From the NCBI RefSeq assembly GCF_048593235.1, contig NC_133618.1, forward strand, positions 494,469,675 to 494,533,674: 64,000 bases of DNA. The letters run 5' to 3'. Made by a program: the position numbers and the translations under genes. Position 1 is the stretch's first letter. Each line of letters opens with the position of its first letter. Source of the DNA: Sminthopsis crassicaudata. Its lineage: Eukaryota. Below are positions 2,417-59,800 of this stretch, one piece after another. The notes below the pieces were generated by a model. That model saw only the letters and a list, made by a program, of their open reading frames with translations. It made no database searches and had not been told where the DNA came from.

Positions 2417-5400
2417 CTGCAGGGACCTAAGAGCCTTAAGCCCTAATAAGCTACCTGTGCTGCAAGTAAGAGTTCTAGCATGCTGCAGTGTCCATTAAGC
2501 ACTCCAATCCTTCTGTACTCAAAAACTCAGATTTATTGGGTAACTTTCTAGGAGAAAAAACAAAAAAACTCTAAAGTTTCCCTGGCTCAGGCATACAAAA
2601 AGATCCCAAAGGGCAGAACACATAGAACTGACCCAATGGTGGGAGATCTGTCTGACTGGTTTTAGGCTTAGTCCTGCCCAGAAGCTGAGCACTAGCTTAG
2701 AAAAAAAGGATTTATTTTTGCCTGGGGATCCTCAGAATTCCCCTAGCCTTCTTTATAAAATAGCATATGAACTGATGCTGAGTGAAGCGAGCAGAACCTG
2801 GAAAACATTGTACACAACAAGATTGTGTGATAATGAGCTGACAGACTTGGCTCTTTTCAGCAATTCAGTGATCCAAGGCAATCCCAATAAACTTTGAGTA
2901 GAAAATGCCATCCACATCCAGAGAGAGACCTATACAGACTAAATATAGATACACTTAGAGTTATACCTCTTTTTCTTTTTTTCTTTCTCATGATTTTTCC
3001 CTTTTGTTCTTATTTTTCTCTCCCAACCTGATATATGAAAATATGTAAAAAGTAGATGTACATGTATAAACAAAAAATAAATAAATAAATAAAAATTTTA
3101 AAAAGAAAAAAAATCCTGGAAAATCTTATATGAACTGATGCAAAGTGATGTTAATAGAATGAAGAGAATATTGTACACAGTAAATAGTAATGCTAATGAC
3201 AATCAACTGTAAAATATTTAGCTACTATAATAAATACTATGATCTACAACAAAAATAACAGTAGCCAGCATGCTTCTGCCCCCTGGTGGCTCCAAGAACA
3301 AAGACTACCCTTGACAGGGTTAGGATGCTCTGGGGCCTGAACTTGACCTCTCTCAGACAGGGCCCTGTCCTCACGCCCAGGATCCAAGCCAGGTACATCG
3401 GGGCTCTGCTTCAGATTAGAAGCCCTTGCATTAGTAGGTATCTGGGAAAGGGGACAAAGGTCCCAGCCCCAGAACCTCTGGGTTCTGTCCCCCAGCTCAT
3501 CTCTCTGCTGCCTCCCATTAGACCCTAACTTCCAAATCTCCCTCTTCTTTCCTGTGATGTGGACTAGCAGGAAAGGACTCCCCAAGGCTTTGAGAAAGGG
3601 AGGTGAGACCATAAGTGGTAAAGGCAGAGAACAATGACAGGGTTCTTATCGGGAGAGGATGGGTCTAAGTGACCCAACCAGGAGCGGAGGGCAGGGCAGT
3701 GAAAGCAGAAGTGAACATCTACCCATCAGATCAGCAACAGCTGAAACCTGCTCCTCAATTCCCAGGAAAGGGCCCCTGAGGGTGAGGAAGGAGCACCACC
3801 TGGACACTGACAAGTGCAAACACCCAGGGAGGCATTCTCTCCAGTTAATACCTTGACTATTGCCACCTCACTATACAATCCGGGTCCTTTAGCCAGGTTA
3901 TCCATTTTCCCAATTTTTACCACCCCCCCATAGCCTAATTCCTTCTCAGCATCAAGCTCACCTGCCTGACAGGCACTGGCACAAGAAACACTGGATTTAG
4001 TGAAAGAAAACCAGTGTCTGGACCCCAGCTCCCCCATTTGGGCAGCAAGCTGAGTTATCCCTTTTCTATCCCAATCACCATGCCAAAGATGTCCAGCTTA
4101 TGAAAAATGAGAAAGATAGGGTGGTTTCTAGAGATCAGAACTGAGGACAAATACTGAAGCCTGACAACCTTCCAACTGTACAACACCAAACATTTAGCAA
4201 AGATATTAATCCCCACCAAGGAGAGCAGAAAAGCATAGAGAAGTAATAGGGCAAAGCTAGCAAGGATCTTAGTGGCCCCAAATGGAACCAAAATTTATAC
4301 TTTCAGAAAGTTAGGACAAGAGCCTGAAAAGAAAGGAGCCAAGGACATGCCTAGCATTGATCAGAGCCTAGCTCCCAGCCTGCCAAAGGCCAGTAGGAAG
4401 CTCTTGAAATGTTCAATTCCTATAGTCCTCCCTAAGAGTGAGGAGGCCAGGGTCCAAGGGGCAAAACACCCCCTCTCATCCTGTTCATTTCAGAAGGCAA
4501 ATTTCCTTCAGCCACAAATTGAGGTAAGGTACAGATAGGCATGAGAGCAGGAAGCTTGGATCAATGAAAAAGGCACCATGACAGTTTAAGAGACTATTAG
4601 CAAAGAGCAGTGTGTTTATACAGCTTCCCCAAAAGGACAGAAAAATGTGCTAAAGATTTGGGTTATAATAGCCAGGATGCCTGGGAGGAAGGAAGGGGCT
4701 TATACCCCAGACTCCAGCCCAATCAGTATTGCCTCACCTATACTAGCTAGTTTTCAGGGCACTGAGACCCCTCACATATTATATGGCATTACTGCAATCC
4801 TAGGACATAAGCATATTACAGGGTAGCAGCCTCTGCTGGACAAGGTGAACTACTACATTCACAGAAACATCAATGTTTGGGTTCCATATACCCTTAGTCT
4901 TCCTCCCTAAGTGGTTTTCCTAATCTTTTAGGAGATAGATAAGCTCAAAAAGATTTCTAAATTCAGTCCAAAAAACAACTTCACTCAATCAGGACAATTA
5001 TGAAAAGCCCTGAAGGAAGGACCTGAGCTGCTTATTGTGGGCCTAGGCTCATTCTTCAGCACATCTTAAGAAAAATGAAGAAAAAATATTTTCTTATTGT
5101 TACCAGAAACTCTAATGTCTTTGACTCAGTCACGGAACCATATATGACTTTCTCCAGAAAAACAAAGTCCAATCATTAGACTTTATTGGGAAGAAGACAG
5201 GCCAGGACAGCCCTTCCCTGCACATTATGCTTCAGAAGCCAAAGTCAGCAGTGGGATATGGGGCAGAGCAGAAGGGCCAGTCAACAGGGCCATCTGCCAC
5301 AGCCAGGGATACCAAGAGGCCCCCAAAGCCCAGTCACTTTCTGGGACCATGAAGAATCTCTGGAATATCAAGATAGCTAGAGCACTGTATTCTCTAAAAT

Positions 5401-51062: not shown

Positions 51063-53521
51063 ATGGCTTCCCAGAACCGCGACCCCGCTGCTGCCAGCGC
51101 TACCGCCGCCTCCCGCAAGGGGACCGAGCCTGGGGCGGGCGCGGCTCGCGGGTCCGTAGGCAAGAGGTGAGAGTTCCCGAAGCTCGGGGCCGAGGAAGCC
51201 GGAGAGCCTGCGGCCGGGAGGGAGGGAGGCGGGGGAGCGCACTGCCCCCCAGACGGAGGTCGGGCTGGAGCCTGGGGGGCTCGATGGGAGGAGGCCGGGG
51301 TAAGGCCCCCAGTTCTCGGTAACCGAAACTCCCCCCGCCCCTTCTCTGCAGGTTACAGCAGGAGTTGATGACCCTAATGGTGAGTAGGCACTCGCTGCCT
51401 ATTGGTCAGCCCCAGCAGCCCGGAGGCCCCCGCCTCCCGCTCAGCCCCCCACCATCGAGGCAAAGACCCGCTGAAAGCGACCTCGGCCTCCAGACCCGGG
51501 TTCTGTCTTTTACAGGGGGGACCTGGGAGGAATGTGGACTTTTACAACCACCGCTAACTTTGCCCCCCCCCCCGACTGGTCGCTGGACCTCCCACCCCCA
51601 GCTCTGCGCGTGCCCCTCTCCCACCCCCAAAAACGCCAAACCTGAGTGGGCCAGGTTGTCTTTTATTGGGGTCAGTTATAATCACAACAGTATGGCTTTA
51701 GGCTGCAGCCCTTTCACCCGCGGATTCTCCCCGCCGGAAGGCCTGGGAAGGAGCTTCGGGGCCATCTAAAGCCAGGCTCGGCAGCCCACCCCAGAAAATG
51801 CTTATTCTTCTCCGCAGATGTCGGGAGACAAAGGAATTTCTGCCTTCCCGGAGTCGGACAATCTCTTCAAATGGGTGGGAACCATCCACGGGGCAGCTGG
51901 GACGGTGAGCCTCTGGGACTGGAAGTGGGGGGGACCTGCGCAGTGTGCTCTGTATAACTGAACTAAGGGATTGGGTGAGAGGACGCCTGAGGGGTAGAGG
52001 AGAAAGCCCCACCCCCAAAAGTGAAGCTCTTATGTTTGTAACTCTGAGGCTTTCCTGACCATCTCTAACGCCCAGTGACCTCCGGAGGGCAAATGGTAAT
52101 AACGCAGTGTTGTGTACCGGAGGAAAGGGAGACAGGGCACTTTGGCTCCTGCCTTTTTTCCCTTTGGGCCAAAGTGCCTTCTGTAGCTTAGATGTCCCCT
52201 CAAGCTCAGTCCTGCTCCACTCACTTGTTTATTTGGATGTTTCTTCCTCAGGTATATGAAGACCTAAGGTACAAGCTGTCCTTGGAGTTTCCCAGCGGTT
52301 ACCCATATAATGCTCCCACTGTGAAATTTGTCACACCTTGTTACCATCCTAATGTGGACACCCAAGGCAATATCTGTTTGGACATCCTCAAGGACAAGTG
52401 GTCAGCGCTGTATGATGTCAGGACCATCCTACTATCCATCCAGAGCCTGCTGGGAGGTGATGCCTACTGTCTCTTTAGGCTTTCTTCTTTCTCTTCCCCG
52501 GCTCTCCCCTTCTCTTCCCCGGCTCTCCCCTCCTCTTCCCTCTGAGGTTTAAGATTATTACACTTTACTCTCTTTTCACCATCTTCTAACTCACAGAATG
52601 TCAGAAGCCATCTAGCTTAACCATTACTACACTTGTGAGCCTAATTTTTACAGAGCTCCAATTTCCTAGGCAGTTGTTTTTCTGGACTTCCCTTCTAACA
52701 TGTTGTTTCCACCTACAGAGCCCAACATTGATAGCCCATTGAACACACATGCTGCTGAACTTTGGACAAATCCCACAGGTAAATCCTCTGTTAAAACAAG
52801 AACAAACTTTTCCTTAGATGATTTAAAATGAAAACTTCTGTCCTACATAGATTAAACTCTTTGTCCTTGAGAACATTTAGGCAAATGGTGCTGTGGGTAA
52901 AATGATAACTCTTATCATAGTGGTATTCAAAGAGTAGCTATTGCAAAAATCCTAAGAGATCTTTTAACTAAAATATGTTCTTAAGTGAATGGGATAGAGG
53001 GAACCTTAGCAGAAGGAGCTTGTTGTGTATGGGAACAAACACTGAACTTTGGTTAAGAAGAGAATGAGGGGGCAGCTAGGTGGCACAGTGGATAGAGCAC
53101 CAGCCTTGAATTCAGGAGGACCCTAGTTCAAATCTGGTCTCAGACACTTAACACTTCCTAGCTGTGTGACTTTGGGCAAGTCACTTAACCCCAGCCTCAG
53201 GAAAAAAAAAAAGAGAGAGAGAGAATGAATTCTGCTAGCTTCTAGTTTGCCAGATTTGGAGCAAAAGCACTTCCCCTAGAAACGATTAGCATGGAAAGGA
53301 GTGGTCTAGGATCAAGGAAGAAATGGGAGAAAAATTAAAGGAAGGCTACCTCATTCTAAAATTATTAGATTTAATATTAACCCTTTGGGGTTTTGTCAGA
53401 ACACTGGCATGTCCCTGGAAACCCCCAGGCCAGTTGCTTACCTATTTATCTTCTCTCCCCAGCCTTTAAAAAGTACCTGCTGGAAACCTACATGAAGCAG
53501 GTGACTAGCCAAGAGCCCTGA
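51063..53521 (+). CDS. UBE2C: Ubiquitin-conjugating enzyme E2 C (UbcH10), 6 exons, 180 aa
   Basis: Exons 51063-51166, 51352-51379, 51818-51904, 52252-52456, 52719-52778, 53463-53521, total 543 nt. [10 protein letters not shown]...[11 protein letters not shown], catalytic [25 protein letters not shown] at 53706. Confidence 0.98.
53069..53212 (+). mobile_element. Marsupial SINE in UBE2C intron 5
   Basis: ggggcagctaggtggcacagtggatagagcacc with an A-tail and TSD gagaatga. Confidence 0.9.
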
Positions 53522-54292
53522 CCCTGGCTGCCCAGTCTGCCTTCCCTTCATCTTGTGTGTATGTGTATGTGTGTATGTGTGTGTATCTTTTTCTCTTCCT
53601 CATAATGTCTTCTATCTCTTTTCTTCTGTACAGGACTCTGTATCATAGACTTTTCCTTTTTTTTTCCCTCTTAAACTCTAGACTAGTCCTCAATATTAAT
53701 GTATAAATAAATTTTGGTTTGTTTTTTTTTTTTGTTTTGTTTTTAAAGCTGTTGCTGTGTTGTTTGGCTCTCTTTGGCGGAAGGATGGGGAACTGATGAG
53801 CTGTAAACTGAACCTCATTATAGAGGAAACAATTCCCTGGGGTCTGAGCTAGTCTCTCTAGCAAGCAGTGTACAATGTCAGAGCTAGATAGGACATTAGA
53901 ACATAGGCCATGGAATATTTTGAATTAGAAGGAATCCTGGAGCTGGATTAACTAGCTGATCCAAACCACTTTTCTGTCACAGATGGGAAAATGGAGAACT
54001 AGACATAGCTAAATCAGTGGACCAGAAATTGAGTCTTTTACAATGTAGTTTTGTTCCTTCATCATTATCCTACCTTCCAGCTGTTTTATATTTGTAGTTG
54101 CACTTGAGCCTTATTCTTGAAAATAGTTCCTTCTTATAATGCCCCCTGCTTTGCCCTCCTGGGATTTGAACTGGGAAAGAATATGACTTAGCAACCTTAC
54201 ATTGAAGTGGTTCCCTGGTGTAGAAGACTGACATCTGCTGACTTCTCAAGGGGAAAGGGGAGAGATGTTCCTGTAGTAGGCTACATTCAGCT

Positions 54293-54780
54293 TCATGCTA
54301 CTATACAATGAGATTGAAGCCTGTCGGGAGCCCGGGCACAGCATCCCCGAGGACTCCTCCCAGCTGAGCTCTCAGGGCTGTGTTCTAATGCTTCAGGATC
54401 TCCCACTGTGGCCTCCACACTCCACACAGGTACATTGACCTTGGTCTCCATCTCCAAAAGCATCTCTTCCAGGCGTTGCCCCCATTGGGCCAGTTCTTCA
54501 GGCAGCTCCCCAGCTCTTTCAGAGGTCCTTCCACTGGGCCGTCTCAGACTCCAGCCCTTGGGCCCAAAGGATATAACCCCAGTATTAACCAACTGGGTCC
54601 CAGAGGCTGGAGATGGCAGGGGGAAAATCTGGCTGAGGTCATGGGCCCGACCCAGATCCTGCAGGAAAATTTCCAGGGCAGACAAACAGAGCACCCAGAT
54701 TCGCTCCAGCTCCATTTTCACCTCTTCCTCCTGTCTGCCCCCTGGATCTGTGAGTTCGGCCAGAAGCTGGTTCCGAAGGC
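54293..54780 (-). CDS. RGS9BP (R9AP)-like protein, exon 2 (C-terminal 162 aa, ends in CaaX)
   Basis: Polypyrimidine tract plus caacag acceptor. Open frame GLRNQLLAEL...ELERIWVLCLSALEIFLQDLGRAHDLSQIFPL...QLVNTGV...EEMLLEMETKVNVPVWSVEA...GCCARAPDRLQSHCIVA*. Recalled human R9AP segments: [26 protein letters not shown]...FPL...LVRTGV and EMIDNMEMKVNVPRWTVQA. Confidence 0.85.
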
Positions 54781-55079
54781 CTGTTGGGGGGGGAGGGAAA
54801 GAGAAGGCAAAGAACAGGGGCAGCCACAGGGGATAACAAACGGGGCATTAGATCTCAGTGGCCACAGTGAGAATTTTAAGAGCTCCGGCCTCACTTTGAT
54901 AGATTGAAATAATTCCTAAGGTCCTAGGATCTAGAGAACGGCTAGCAAGTGTGACAGGTATCCTTAGAGGGCCATTTGGCCCACCTCCCTTTACAGAAAG
55001 GAATGCCAGGCAATAAAACAGAAGCAGAATTCGAACTCCGCGTCTGCTCCAAAGGCAGTGCTCTTCCCACTCCGCCGCT

Positions 55080-55620
55080 TGGAAGCCCCCGGCCCTCCCA
55101 CACCTAGCGGACTCCTGCCCCTTCCTTAAGCACCGCCTCCCGCTCCTCCGTCCCCCTTCCCCCTCCCCTCGGTACCCTGTCTGCTCACCCAGACTCAACT
55201 CGAGGCCCCGGCGGCCGCTCTCCTCCAGAGCCCGGCGCAGCCTCCTCCCGTCGGCCGAGCTGCCCACTCCCAGCACCAACTGCCTGTAGCTGGCAGTGAA
55301 CCTGTTGAGCGCTTCGTACGCCGCCCGGCACTCGGCCACAGCCTCCCGGGATTCCCGGGCCTTCTCCCCTGGCCCCGCGCTCCGCATGCCTCCCTCGGTT
55401 TTGGCAATCTCGGCCTTGGCCGCAGCCTGGAGTAGCAAAGCTCGGGCTCTTTCTCTTTCAGCCTCCGCCCTTGCCAGCGGCCAACCCCCTCCCCACCCCT
55501 CCGGGACCCGGAGAAGGCGGAGACAGCCCGAAAGCTCCGGCCCACCAGCTCCCTCTACGCTGCGTGGTCCGACTAGCCTGCGGTTTCCACCTTCCCGCTA
55601 ACCTAGCCCTCTCGGGTTTG
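55080..55620. promoter_or_regulatory. CpG island over the 5' end of the RGS9BP-like gene
   Basis: Locally dense CpG covering exon 1 and about 230 bp upstream. Confidence 0.65.
55189..55387 (-). CDS. RGS9BP (R9AP)-like protein, exon 1
   Basis: First in-frame ATG at 55387, inside a CpG island. MRSAGPGEKARESREAVAECRAAYEALNRFTASYRQLVLGVGSSADGRRLRRALEESGRRGLELSL, then a G|GTGAG donor (phase 1, in frame with exon 2). Recalled R9AP: [36 protein letters not shown]. Confidence 0.85.
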
Positions 55621-56305: not shown

Positions 56306-56783
56306 TTACTGCACACCCTCCATCATCTTCAGGAACTCTGCAAGGACGGAGAGAGGAGAGGAATCAGAAAAGAGATAGGGAGGAGGTGGGGACCACATCT
56401 GGACCCCGTCCCACATAGGCCTGGCTTACTCAAGTTTATTGATACATGCAATTAAGACCTGGAAAGGAATTCAGAGACCGAGGACTTAAGTCCTTCAGTT
56501 GATAGAAAAACTAAATGACTTGCCAACTTAGGGTGCTTAGCTAGTAAGTGGCAGTGCCCAGCTCAGGTTCACATTAGCTTCAGATACCTTGACACAACAC
56601 TGGCACTCATTTCTAGACTGGAAGCTCCTTGGAAGAGGGACAAGATTATTTTCATCTTTACATCTCTGCACCAGGACAAAGTCCCACATCTGCTTTAGTG
56701 TTTAGTGAAAAGGGTTGTTTATAAATGTTACAGTATATCACATCTGGAAGGGACCTTAGAAATAAAGTCAAACTTCTCATTTT

Positions 56784-56819
<36 letters not shown>

Positions 56820-59800
56820 CTCAAGAAAAAAAAAAAAAAAAAGACTCATCCAAAGCCATATAGCAAGGTGGGAGGCTGAACTAGGATCGGTAGGCTCTGA
56901 GAGCTCCCCATCCCTTGCCGAGACTCCTCGAAAAGCCCCTTCCCACAGAACGTGACTATTCATGCACCCCTCCCCGACTACTCCTCTTCCCCTGGGCCCG
57001 CCCACTTCCAGCGGCAACCTCGGCGCTTACCGTCAAAGTCAATTCGTCCGTCATTGTTCTTGTCTCCATCCTTCATTAAGGACTCAATCTCTTCGTCAGT
57101 CACGTGCTCTCCTGAAGCCCGGAAGATCTCCACTAGCTCTTCAGCATCAATATAGCCATCAGCATTCCTGGGGAGTGGGGGGAGGGGAAGGGAAGAGACC
57201 AGACACTTTTCAGGGAGCCCCTCAGGAGGAGACTGCTCCACAAAGGCGCTGCAATGAATCTGAGGAACCAGTGGGGAGAGGGTCCTTACAGATCCTTTAG
57301 TTCACCCGCCTCAAGGCCGGAGACCAGGGCCCAAGCATGGGGCCCAATGGGGCTTCTCCCTGTCCCCTTGCCACTCCCATACACATAAAGCTTCCCCAGC
57401 TCCCCCAGGTGAGTCCGAACTCCCACGTTCCTGGGGCAGCACATCTCCCCCCACCTCACCCTACCCCCGCCCTGACTGACACCTTCCCGGGGAATCGGCC
57501 CAGCGGGCACCAGTTCGGACCTGTCAAAGATACGGAAACACTCGGCCAGCTCTTCCTCACTCTTTCCCTTCGCATCCTCTTTCATCTGCCGCACCATCAT
57601 GACCAAGAACTCTTCAAAGTCGATGGTGCCGCTGCCTAGGAGGGAGAGGTAGCCTTAAAGGCCCTGTCCAGATGTGGCTGCCCTCCCCTCCCAGCTGGCC
57701 GCAACCCCCAGCTCACCATCTTCATCCACCTCCTCTATGATGGCGTCCAACTCCTCCTTGGTGGGGGTCTGGCCCAGCATCCGCATCACTGTGCCCAACT
57801 CCTTGGTGCTGATGTCACCACCGCCATCAGCATCAAACATGTCGAAGGCGGCTTTGAACTCTGAGAGGGAGGCCCCAGGAATGAAAAGGGTGACCTGCTA
57901 AGAGCCCTAAGTCCACTCCCCTGCCCCTGCCCACAAAAAATACATACTCACCAGCGATCATTTCCTCGCTGAGGAAGGACCGGGCTTCTGCCTGCTGGTC
58001 CGTCTGCAACACACAAGAGAAAGTCAGGGACCAGGTCTCGGGGAAGGAGAAGGGAAAGAGAGAAGGGGAAAGGGGACCTCCAGGAGGGGGCTAAGCTGGA
58101 GAGAGCCAAGCGCTCCCCTGCTGTTAAAGAGCGGTTCAGTTCTGTTTTACTACTCACATGATCTTGGACAGGTCATTCGTTCACTTTCAGGGTCCCTATT
58201 TCCCTATCAGTAAAATGAGGAGATTGATCCAGAAAGTCTCTAAGGTTCNNNNNNNNNNNNNNNNNNNNNNNNNNNNNNNNNNNNNNNNNNNNNNNNNNNN
58301 NNNNNNNNNNNNNNNNNNNNNNNNNNNNNNNNNNNNNNNNNNNNNNNNNNNNNNNNNNNNNNNNNNNNNNNNNNNNNNNNNNNNNNNNNNNNNNNNNNNN
58401 NNNNNNNNNNNNNNNNNNNNNNNNNNNNNNNNNNNNNNNNNNNNNNNNNNNNNNNNNNNNNNNNNNNNNNNNNNNNNNNNNNNNNNNNNNNNNNNNNNNN
58501 NNNNNNNNNNNNNNNNNNNNNNNNNNNNNNNNNNNNNNNNNNNNNNNNNNNNNNNNNNNNNNNNNNNNNNNNNNNNNNNNNNNNNNNNNNNNNNNNNNNN
58601 NNNNNNNNNNNNNNNNNNNNNNNNNNNNNNNNNNNNNNNNNNNNNNNNNNNNNNNNNNNNNNNNNNNNNNNNNNNNNNNNNNNNNNNNNNNNNNNNNNNN
58701 NNNNNNNNNNNNNNNNNNNNNNNNNNNNNNNNNNNNNNNNNNNNNNNNNNNNNNNNNNNNNNNNNNNNNNNNNNNNNNNNNNNNNGCCAATCTTTTGATG
58801 ATAAATTTCTTCTTAGTAGTTAGACCAAGTCTTTGGACAACAGATATACAATCACTCTCTAGACTCAAACTCTTCTTGATTAGGTAGCATTTGATATGTT
58901 GTTCTGCCGTGTCTTTAAAGTTCATGGAGTAGAGAATCTGTATAAAAATTCACCACCACTCCCACTCCCCCAAGACTAATGCCATTTAAAGACTAAGACA
59001 ACTTAGTTGAGGAAAGGGTACATAGAGTATTATCATGGGGCCATCCTTATTCCTTAACAAAGCAAACAATAGAAAGAGAACTAACTGATGGTCTTATCCC
59101 TACTACTCCTCATTCATCAGGCTGAAGGCCCTCCATAGAGGACAGTGTAGATTAGAACTGATAGCTACCAACTATTGGACAGAATATCAGAGATGAAAGG
59201 ACCCTTAGAGATCATTTGATCCAACTCCCTTATTTTATTGAAGAGAAAACTGAGGACCTGAGGGGATTAAGTGATTTGAACAAAGTCATAGAGAAGTGTA
59301 TGGAAGAGTTGGAATTTGACCCAGGACTTTGGACATCAGTACACCATTGACTACGCCATCTTGCTTTAGTGGCGTATATATAACTGCTTACAATTCTTAA
59401 CATTTCTGAGCCTCAGATTTCCTTTGCCAAATAGGGGTGATCCCATATCCCTGCCAGGTTTTGTGAGGTAGTGTAATACAGTGGGGAAAGTCCCAGGTTA
59501 TAGAGCACCAGCCTTGAATTCAGGAGGACCAAAGTTCAAATCTGGTCTCAGACACTTAACACTTCCTAGCTGAGTGACCCTGGGCAAGTCACTTAATCCC
59601 AGCCTCAGGGAAAAAAAAAGAAAGAAAGAAAGAAAGTCCCAGGTTAACTGTGTCCAGACTTCTCCCAGTCCCATAGTCTGGAGTCTGGAGTCCAGTCTGG
59701 AGAAGTCTGGAGACATCTGACCTGGGACTTTCCACACTGGACTACACTGACATTGACTTCATGTGGTACTGTAACAGGCAAGTTAAGTAACTCTGACCTT

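Follow-up and report, generated by a model that had tools for sequence, protein, structure and literature searches.

A 64,000-nucleotide stretch of the genome of the fat-tailed dunnart, Sminthopsis crassicaudata (contig NC_133618.1, positions 494,469,675 to 494,533,674; hereafter, the window) contains, between TNNC2 and UBE2C, a two-exon gene on the minus strand, which is the subject of this analysis. This gene is the dunnart orthologue of vertebrate R9AP-like (RGS9BP-like, RGS9BP3), an old paralogue of RGS9BP. The gene comprises the following features (positions are those of the window):

55000..55600: CpG island that includes the start codon together with exon 1 and the presumed promoter
55387..55189, minus strand: coding exon 1, 199 nt, with the ATG at 55387-55385; encodes residues 1-66 and the first base of codon 67, corresponding to helix A and the greater part of helix B in a predicted three-helix bundle
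55188..54781, minus strand: the single intron of the coding region, 408 nt, GT-AG, phase 1
54780..54293, minus strand: coding exon 2 of 488 nt, which closes with the TGA stop (54295-54293); encodes residues 67-228, from the last part of helix B through helix C, a disordered linker and a heptad/SNARE-like helix to a Cys-rich tail
54338..54343, minus strand: Cys213-Cys214, candidate palmitoylation sites (putative modification)
54296..54307, minus strand: C-terminal CaaX box Cys-Ile-Val-Ala, the CaaX cysteine being Cys225

An earlier note, made from the letters of this DNA alone, had described a two-exon minus-strand gene with a phase-1 intron of 408 nt and an open frame of 228 amino acids, and its coordinates were confirmed exactly. 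The spliced coding sequence of 687 nt was translated into 228 amino acids without an internal stop. The intron starts with GTGAGC and ends with a pyrimidine tract followed by CAG. The gene was also said to start in a CpG island of its own, which was borne out by a GC content of 0.63-0.73 and a CpG observed/expected ratio of 0.68-0.85 over 55000-55600, compared with at most 0.26 in the flanks.

The spliced protein was identical at 228 of 228 residues to the RefSeq model XP_074149639.1 of S. crassicaudata, which carries the automated label "RGS9BP-like" that the earlier note had suspected. Identity to eleven other marsupial RGS9BP-like models was 87-96%. A search with exon 2 retrieved the RGS9BP-like models of bilby, koala and opossum at 86-89% identity and that of a rodent, the degu (Octodon degus), at 59%, and the protein cluster of the koala sequence contained ten marsupial species. 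The match to the RefSeq model and the identities among marsupials far exceed chance. In an alignment of 13 marsupial sequences, every frame was intact and 154 of the 228 columns were invariant.

Selection on the coding sequence was estimated from the ratio of nonsynonymous to synonymous substitution rates (dN/dS, omega). Between the window and koala genes, dN/dS was 0.21 by the NG86 method (bootstrap interval 0.11-0.34) and 0.36 by YN00; between the window and degu genes, it was 0.25-0.27. A maximum-likelihood estimate with one omega value for the coding sequences of dunnart, koala, degu, turtle and rhea, the five species covered by the codon analyses, was 0.16. At the DNA level, the window and koala coding sequences were 90.6% identical, compared with 77.6% for the intron, which had 77 gapped columns. 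The dN/dS check proposed in the earlier note thus returned omega values of 0.16-0.36, and none of the 13 marsupial frames was disrupted; it is concluded that the gene is intact and under purifying selection in marsupials.

Transcript signal was sought in the word content of sequencing runs from the same organism, whose RNA label is a guess and not a confirmed type. Five runs from three studies (X7, X9, X11, X13 and X15) contained 0.49-0.56 of the sampled words of the interval 54200-55600. Exon 2 together with part of the 3' untranslated region makes up 0.41 of this interval and exon 1 makes up 0.14, that is, approximately 0.56 together. In the same five runs, the share of intron words was 0.00. 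Since the share of words found matches that of both exons and the intron is absent, the pattern is that expected of spliced mRNA; the signal is consistent with splicing, although indirectly, through the word content of the runs.

Family membership was examined by means of profile searches and a phylogenetic tree. It has been described that vertebrates have three R9AP genes, R9AP, R9AP-B and R9AP-like, with 0, 2 and 1 coding introns, respectively (Lamb et al. 2018, PMC5795056, section 2.6), and R9AP-like was named RGS9BP3 in a 2025 preprint (10.1101/2025.10.31.685797). With R7BP, the family therefore has four members. An exhaustive profile search retrieved 122 relatives, with source names for a subset of them; the tree set was supplemented with true RGS9BP proteins, among them the ones from wallaby, sugar glider and bilby, and a tree of 70 proteins was built by a careful IQ-TREE search. 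The window protein, the other marsupial proteins and the degu protein formed a group with 100/100 support. This group was nested in a clade of 20 rows, also supported at 100/100, which includes proteins named RGS9BP-like from turtle, rhea, tinamou, tailed frog, coelacanth, sturgeon, bonytongue, zebrafish (Swiss-Prot Q504F3), seahorse, shark and skates. The sister of this R9AP-like clade was R9AP-B (newt), with 95/91 support, and the R9AP proteins of the transmembrane type, marsupial RGS9BP included, formed a separate group. Wallaby, sugar glider and bilby each possess a separate RGS9BP of the transmembrane type (237 amino acids) besides the R9AP-like gene. The earlier note had favoured a paralogue of RGS9BP over a relocated orthologue and had proposed a tree with RGS9BP as the check; both the tree and the separate marsupial RGS9BP upheld this view. 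Its suggestion of an unrecognised third family member failed, as the group was described in 2018 and is one of four.

The similarity to R9AP itself was modest. A BLASTP alignment to a placental R9AP, that of the lynx, had 40% identity over 178 amino acids (E = 3e-31), within a range of 39-40% for R9AP proteins, and it contained the four blocks of RGS9BP similarity that had been recognised from the sequence. The motifs G-x-SAD, ER-x-WV, FPL...LV-x-TG and KVNVP-x-W-x-VE, which are common to the three R9AP paralogues, were present. A scan of the exon translations and of full-length orthologues with a Pfam library that does not include PF28461 returned no family. In precomputed Pfam assignments, PF28461 is missing from several teleost R9APs, and the current model seems to miss the R9AP-like group.

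A single coding intron in phase 1 was common to the window, koala, degu, turtle and rhea genes. The length of exon 1 was 199 nt in koala, 193 in degu, 238 in turtle and 175 in rhea, and each of these exons leaves phase 1. The structure in these five amniotes fits the published definition of R9AP-like (PMC5795056). For zebrafish, no simple two-exon coding sequence could be reconstructed, in agreement with the extra introns reported for teleosts in the same paper.

The neighbouring genes were located in the window as follows:

51353-52744, plus strand: other coding exons of UBE2C
53459..53521, plus strand: last coding exon and stop of UBE2C
56306..56335, minus strand: last coding exon and stop of TNNC2 (coding part 56309-56335; peptide FLKMMEGVQ, then stop)
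57146-58006, minus strand: other coding exons of TNNC2

Location of the coding exons of both genes verified the position between UBE2C and TNNC2 that had been claimed for the R9AP-like gene. The latter occupies most of the 2.8-kb gap between its neighbours. It is convergent with UBE2C, tail to tail, with approximately 770 nt from stop to stop; it lies on the same strand as TNNC2, head to tail, and the TNNC2 stop is approximately 920 nt upstream of its ATG. The TNNC2 gene region is interrupted by a run of 537 N at 58249-58785, upstream of its exon at 57980-58006.

The same order of TNNC2, the R9AP-like gene and UBE2C was found in degu, opossum, koala, bilby, turtle and rhea, with SNX21 beyond TNNC2 and/or DNTTIP1 beyond UBE2C wherever the flanking sequence examined extended that far, and also in wombat, sugar glider and brushtail possum. 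The zebrafish R9AP-like gene adjoins a ube2c/dnttip1 model. The synteny check that had been proposed for this locus was thus positive in marsupials, degu, turtle and rhea. It may be concluded that R9AP-like has adjoined UBE2C since the time of bony fishes, and that its place between TNNC2 and UBE2C dates from early amniotes. An origin as a retrocopy is rejected because of the intron together with the ancestral synteny, and so is an origin as a new gene specific to marsupials, because the clade extends from sharks and rays up to birds and the locus is identical in turtle and rhea.

According to PMC5795056, almost all placentals have R9AP only, and among placentals R9AP-like is known from the degu alone. 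A search of 5.8 billion protein clusters with the degu protein revealed no further placental copy, and the elephant TNNC2-UBE2C interval contained no R9AP-like gene. R9AP-like has been kept by jawed vertebrates from sharks to marsupials, and nearly all placentals have lost it. Of what the earlier note had proposed on this point, retention in marsupials stood, and so did loss in eutherians, with the exception of the degu; the idea of a marsupial peculiarity did not, since animals from sharks to birds have the gene.

Remnants of the gene were found at the placental locus. In the elephant TNNC2 model XP_023405639.1, the terminal ~70 residues (residues ~160-234) match exon 1 of R9AP-like; this end of the model looks like an artefact that absorbed a relic of the lost neighbour. 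A mammalian Logan contig (SRR14860617) contained an exon-1 relic at 2894-3052, located downstream of a TNNC2 EF-hand exon at a distance of approximately 900 bp; it had 54-62% identity and lacked a start codon where the alignment would place one, and no exon 2 was detectable in the remaining 2.3 kb of the contig. From these two exon-1 relics, the loss in placentals looks like decay in place. Similar short, broken open reading frames were also seen in further contigs (P0052, P0054, P0059, P0063, P0106 and P0124).

In the tree, the degu branch was approximately 2.5 times as long as the marsupial branch (0.75 vs ~0.3). Intron 1 of the degu model is mostly an assembly gap (5851 N).

The fold of the protein was predicted with AlphaFold2 from an alignment of 46 sequences, with the window protein as the first row. 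The mean predicted local distance difference test score (pLDDT) was 74.7; four helices (6-40, 48-77, 85-118 and 154-180) were modelled at pLDDT above 90, and the linker 131-153 and the tail after the last helix were predicted to be disordered. In a Foldseek comparison with Swiss-Prot models, the R9BP family ranked first (E 1e-11 to 1e-9), followed by R7BP (E ~3e-6, 14-17% identity) and then by syntaxin-12 and syntaxin-7. When solved structures were searched, the best matches were the closed syntaxins Sso1 and Sso2, and neither of the two solved-structure searches had an R9AP or R7BP structure among its matches. The family profile matched the Habc domain of syntaxin-12 with E = 4e-7. A phmmer search of PDB sequences with exon 2 returned nothing meaningful. 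The protein is thus predicted to form a four-helix module similar to a closed syntaxin, with a three-helix bundle and a heptad helix.

The C-terminal tail differs from that of R9AP. The maximal Kyte-Doolittle mean over 19 residues was 1.26 in the whole protein and -0.14 in the tail, compared with 2.4-3.0 in R9AP and R9AP-B; the window protein therefore has no transmembrane helix. Instead, the tail consists of a Cys-Cys pair, ten residues and Cys-Ile-Val-Ala. The pair was invariant in the 13 marsupial sequences, all of which end in CIVA or CVVA. Across the R9AP-like clade, from sharks to marsupials, a cysteine at position -4 was found in 40 of 41 proteins, and all 41 had at least one further cysteine in the stretch of 21 residues that precedes the final four. 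S or A predominated as the last residue in the fish, frog, turtle and marsupial proteins, and L in those of birds. The one exception at position -4 was the annotated degu model (locus L001:18165-19022), whose last 25-30 residues come from a small third exon and which consequently lacks a CaaX box. When degu exon 2 was read straight on, a protein of 220 amino acids ending in Cys-Cys-Arg-Glu-Thr was obtained, again with a cysteine at -4; the annotated degu C-terminus is thus questionable.

A CaaX box with a final Ala predicts farnesylation, and the combination of neighbouring cysteines with a CaaX box has a precedent in H-Ras. The tail contains a conserved sequence motif for prenylation and palmitoylation. 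In the library searched, no paper was found that mentions the CaaX/Cys tail of R9AP-like or its conserved TNNC2-UBE2C position; the CaaX in the 2018 paper refers to GRKs (PMC5795056). A homologue from the annelid Owenia fusiformis ends in Cys-Thr-Ile-Leu, also a CaaX sequence, whereas other invertebrate homologues end in a transmembrane helix, so that an exchange of a transmembrane anchor for a lipid anchor may have occurred more than once.

The window protein was compared with the known systems that it resembles. It is a member of the R9AP-like group in clade (100/100), phase-1 intron, TNNC2-UBE2C locus and CaaX tail, and no difference from this group was found. In photoreceptors, RGS9-1/Gbeta5L is anchored by the transmembrane protein R9AP (RGS9BP). 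The window protein resembles it in the predicted syntaxin-like three-helix bundle with a heptad helix, in the signature motifs and in the 39-40% identity. However, R9AP ends in a transmembrane helix and lies at another locus, and its coding region is intronless (PMC5795056), whereas the window gene has a coding intron and a tail of the lipidation type. Lying outside the R9AP clade and having no transmembrane helix, the window protein is not an R9AP proper.

R7BP (RGS7BP) is the anchor of R7-RGS/Gbeta5 in neurons. The window protein shares with it the overall predicted fold, a C-terminal Cys-Cys and the absence of a transmembrane helix, which points to a lipid-based and potentially reversible attachment. 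The two differ in that identity in the structural alignment was only 14-17% and that the last cysteine of the window protein is located exactly at -4, in a CaaX box. The tail of R7BP, CCLVSS, has four residues after the last cysteine and is palmitoylated but not prenylated (PMC2171691). No ending of the R7BP type was found among the listed tails of the 122 profile matches, the tail being the only feature by which these matches were checked for R7BP. The window protein thus shows neither a close sequence relationship to R7BP nor a tail of the R7BP type, in which a polybasic stretch precedes a Cys-Cys without a CaaX box. Closed syntaxins (Sso1, Sso2, syntaxin-12 and syntaxin-7) also have a Habc-like bundle packed on a fourth helix, but identity to them was ~10-18%, and they have a complete SNARE motif as well as a transmembrane anchor, in contrast to the short heptad helix and lipidation tail of the window protein.

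By analogy with CaaX boxes in general, Cys-Cys-CaaX proteins such as H-Ras, R9AP and R7BP, the following mechanism can be proposed. Cys225 of the CaaX box would be farnesylated and Cys213/214 would be palmitoylated. These lipids, rather than a transmembrane helix as in R9AP, would hold the protein on the cytoplasmic face of the membrane. The helical module would recruit the GTPase-activating complex of an R7-family RGS protein with Gbeta5, as R9AP and R7BP do, and the recruited complex would speed up GTP hydrolysis by G-alpha at the membrane; a member of the R9AP/R7BP superfamily would be expected to bind the DEP/DHEX region of the R7 RGS protein in this complex. We consider this mechanism as a whole, with a farnesyl and palmitoyl anchor recruiting R7-RGS/Gbeta5, to be somewhat favoured. 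The type of prenyl group may follow the last residue, with farnesyl for S or A (fishes, turtles and marsupials) and geranylgeranyl for L (birds). Whether R9AP-like provides a third mode of anchoring R7-RGS/Gbeta5, both prenylated and palmitoylated and thus unlike the transmembrane R9AP and the R7BP that carries palmitoyl only, appears evenly balanced. The passage of the 2025 preprint that cites Lamb 2018 states that all three R9AP copies are expressed in the eye of frogs and fishes (10.1101/2025.10.31.685797), which makes a retinal role plausible.

The best explanation overall, and in our judgement a very probable one, is that the gene is the dunnart R9AP-like orthologue encoding a syntaxin-like module, with a putative lipid-anchored role in R7-RGS/Gbeta5 signalling. 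Several points weigh against it. According to the literature, no function has been established for this paralogue (PMC5795056; 10.1101/2025.10.31.685797). Identity to R9AP is low, and precomputed PF28461 is present on R9AP but absent from four R9AP-like clusters. The lipid modifications and the RGS partner are read from homology, and the support for splicing is indirect, consisting of word content in runs whose type label ("RNA?") was guessed. Since nearly all placentals have lost the gene, at least that lineage can do without it.

The main rival explanation is a genuine, conserved R9AP-like orthologue in which anchoring of R7-RGS/Gbeta5 was lost or never present; its syntaxin-like module would serve another partner, for example through a SNARE-type or other coiled-coil contact on a lipid-anchored scaffold. 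This possibility is consistent with the lack of an established function in any species (PMC5795056, section 3.1; 10.1101/2025.10.31.685797), with the divergence from R9AP and the absent PF28461, and with ordinary syntaxins being the neighbours among solved structures. Moreover, placentals have lost the gene and retain all four R7 RGS proteins. However, the protein retains the motifs common to the three R9AP paralogues, in the Foldseek comparison R9BP and R7BP were structurally closer than syntaxins by a wide margin, and the preprint passage citing Lamb 2018 places all three copies in the eye of frogs and fishes. A divergent function of this kind is therefore possible but rather unlikely.

A decaying or non-functional reading frame, that is, a pseudogene in the making that was annotated by homology, would agree with the loss in placentals and with the long branch and altered tail of the degu protein. 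It is rejected on account of intact frames, low omega and conserved splice sites: the frame is open, with its 154 invariant residues, in 13 marsupials of American and Australian orders, omega is 0.16-0.36, and the CpG island and the CaaX box are conserved as well as the splice sites. In addition, contigs composed of exons only were found in the runs labelled RNA. We regard decay in the dunnart as very improbable. Relocation of the orthologous RGS9BP in marsupials, which the 39-40% identity to R9AP and the database name containing "RGS9BP" might suggest, can practically be dismissed, being refuted by the presence of both genes in wallaby, sugar glider and bilby, by the fully supported split between R9AP-like and RGS9BP in the tree and by an ancestral locus that is the same in turtle and rhea, and disagreeing also with the coding intron, the CaaX tail and the lack of a transmembrane helix.

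With the assignment to R9AP-like retained, it should be stated that the gene was already represented by the RefSeq model and that the 2018 paper had described both the paralogue group and its disappearance from placentals. Since RefSeq holds the exact model, the present analysis has no value for annotation. Its small additions are the CaaX/Cys tail across the clade, the fixed TNNC2-UBE2C position in amniotes, the relics that placentals retain in place, and the doubt about the annotated C-terminus of the degu protein. The fixed position between TNNC2 and UBE2C provides a simple way to score the presence, decay or loss of R9AP-like in any amniote genome. The clade-wide CaaX and Cys tail provides a testable hypothesis of membrane targeting for research on G-protein signalling and vision. 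If R9AP-like does provide a third mode of anchoring R7-RGS/Gbeta5, marsupials, and possibly the degu, would keep a lipid-switchable route for shutting off G proteins that other placentals have lost, and the dunnart is a laboratory marsupial in which this route could be tested.

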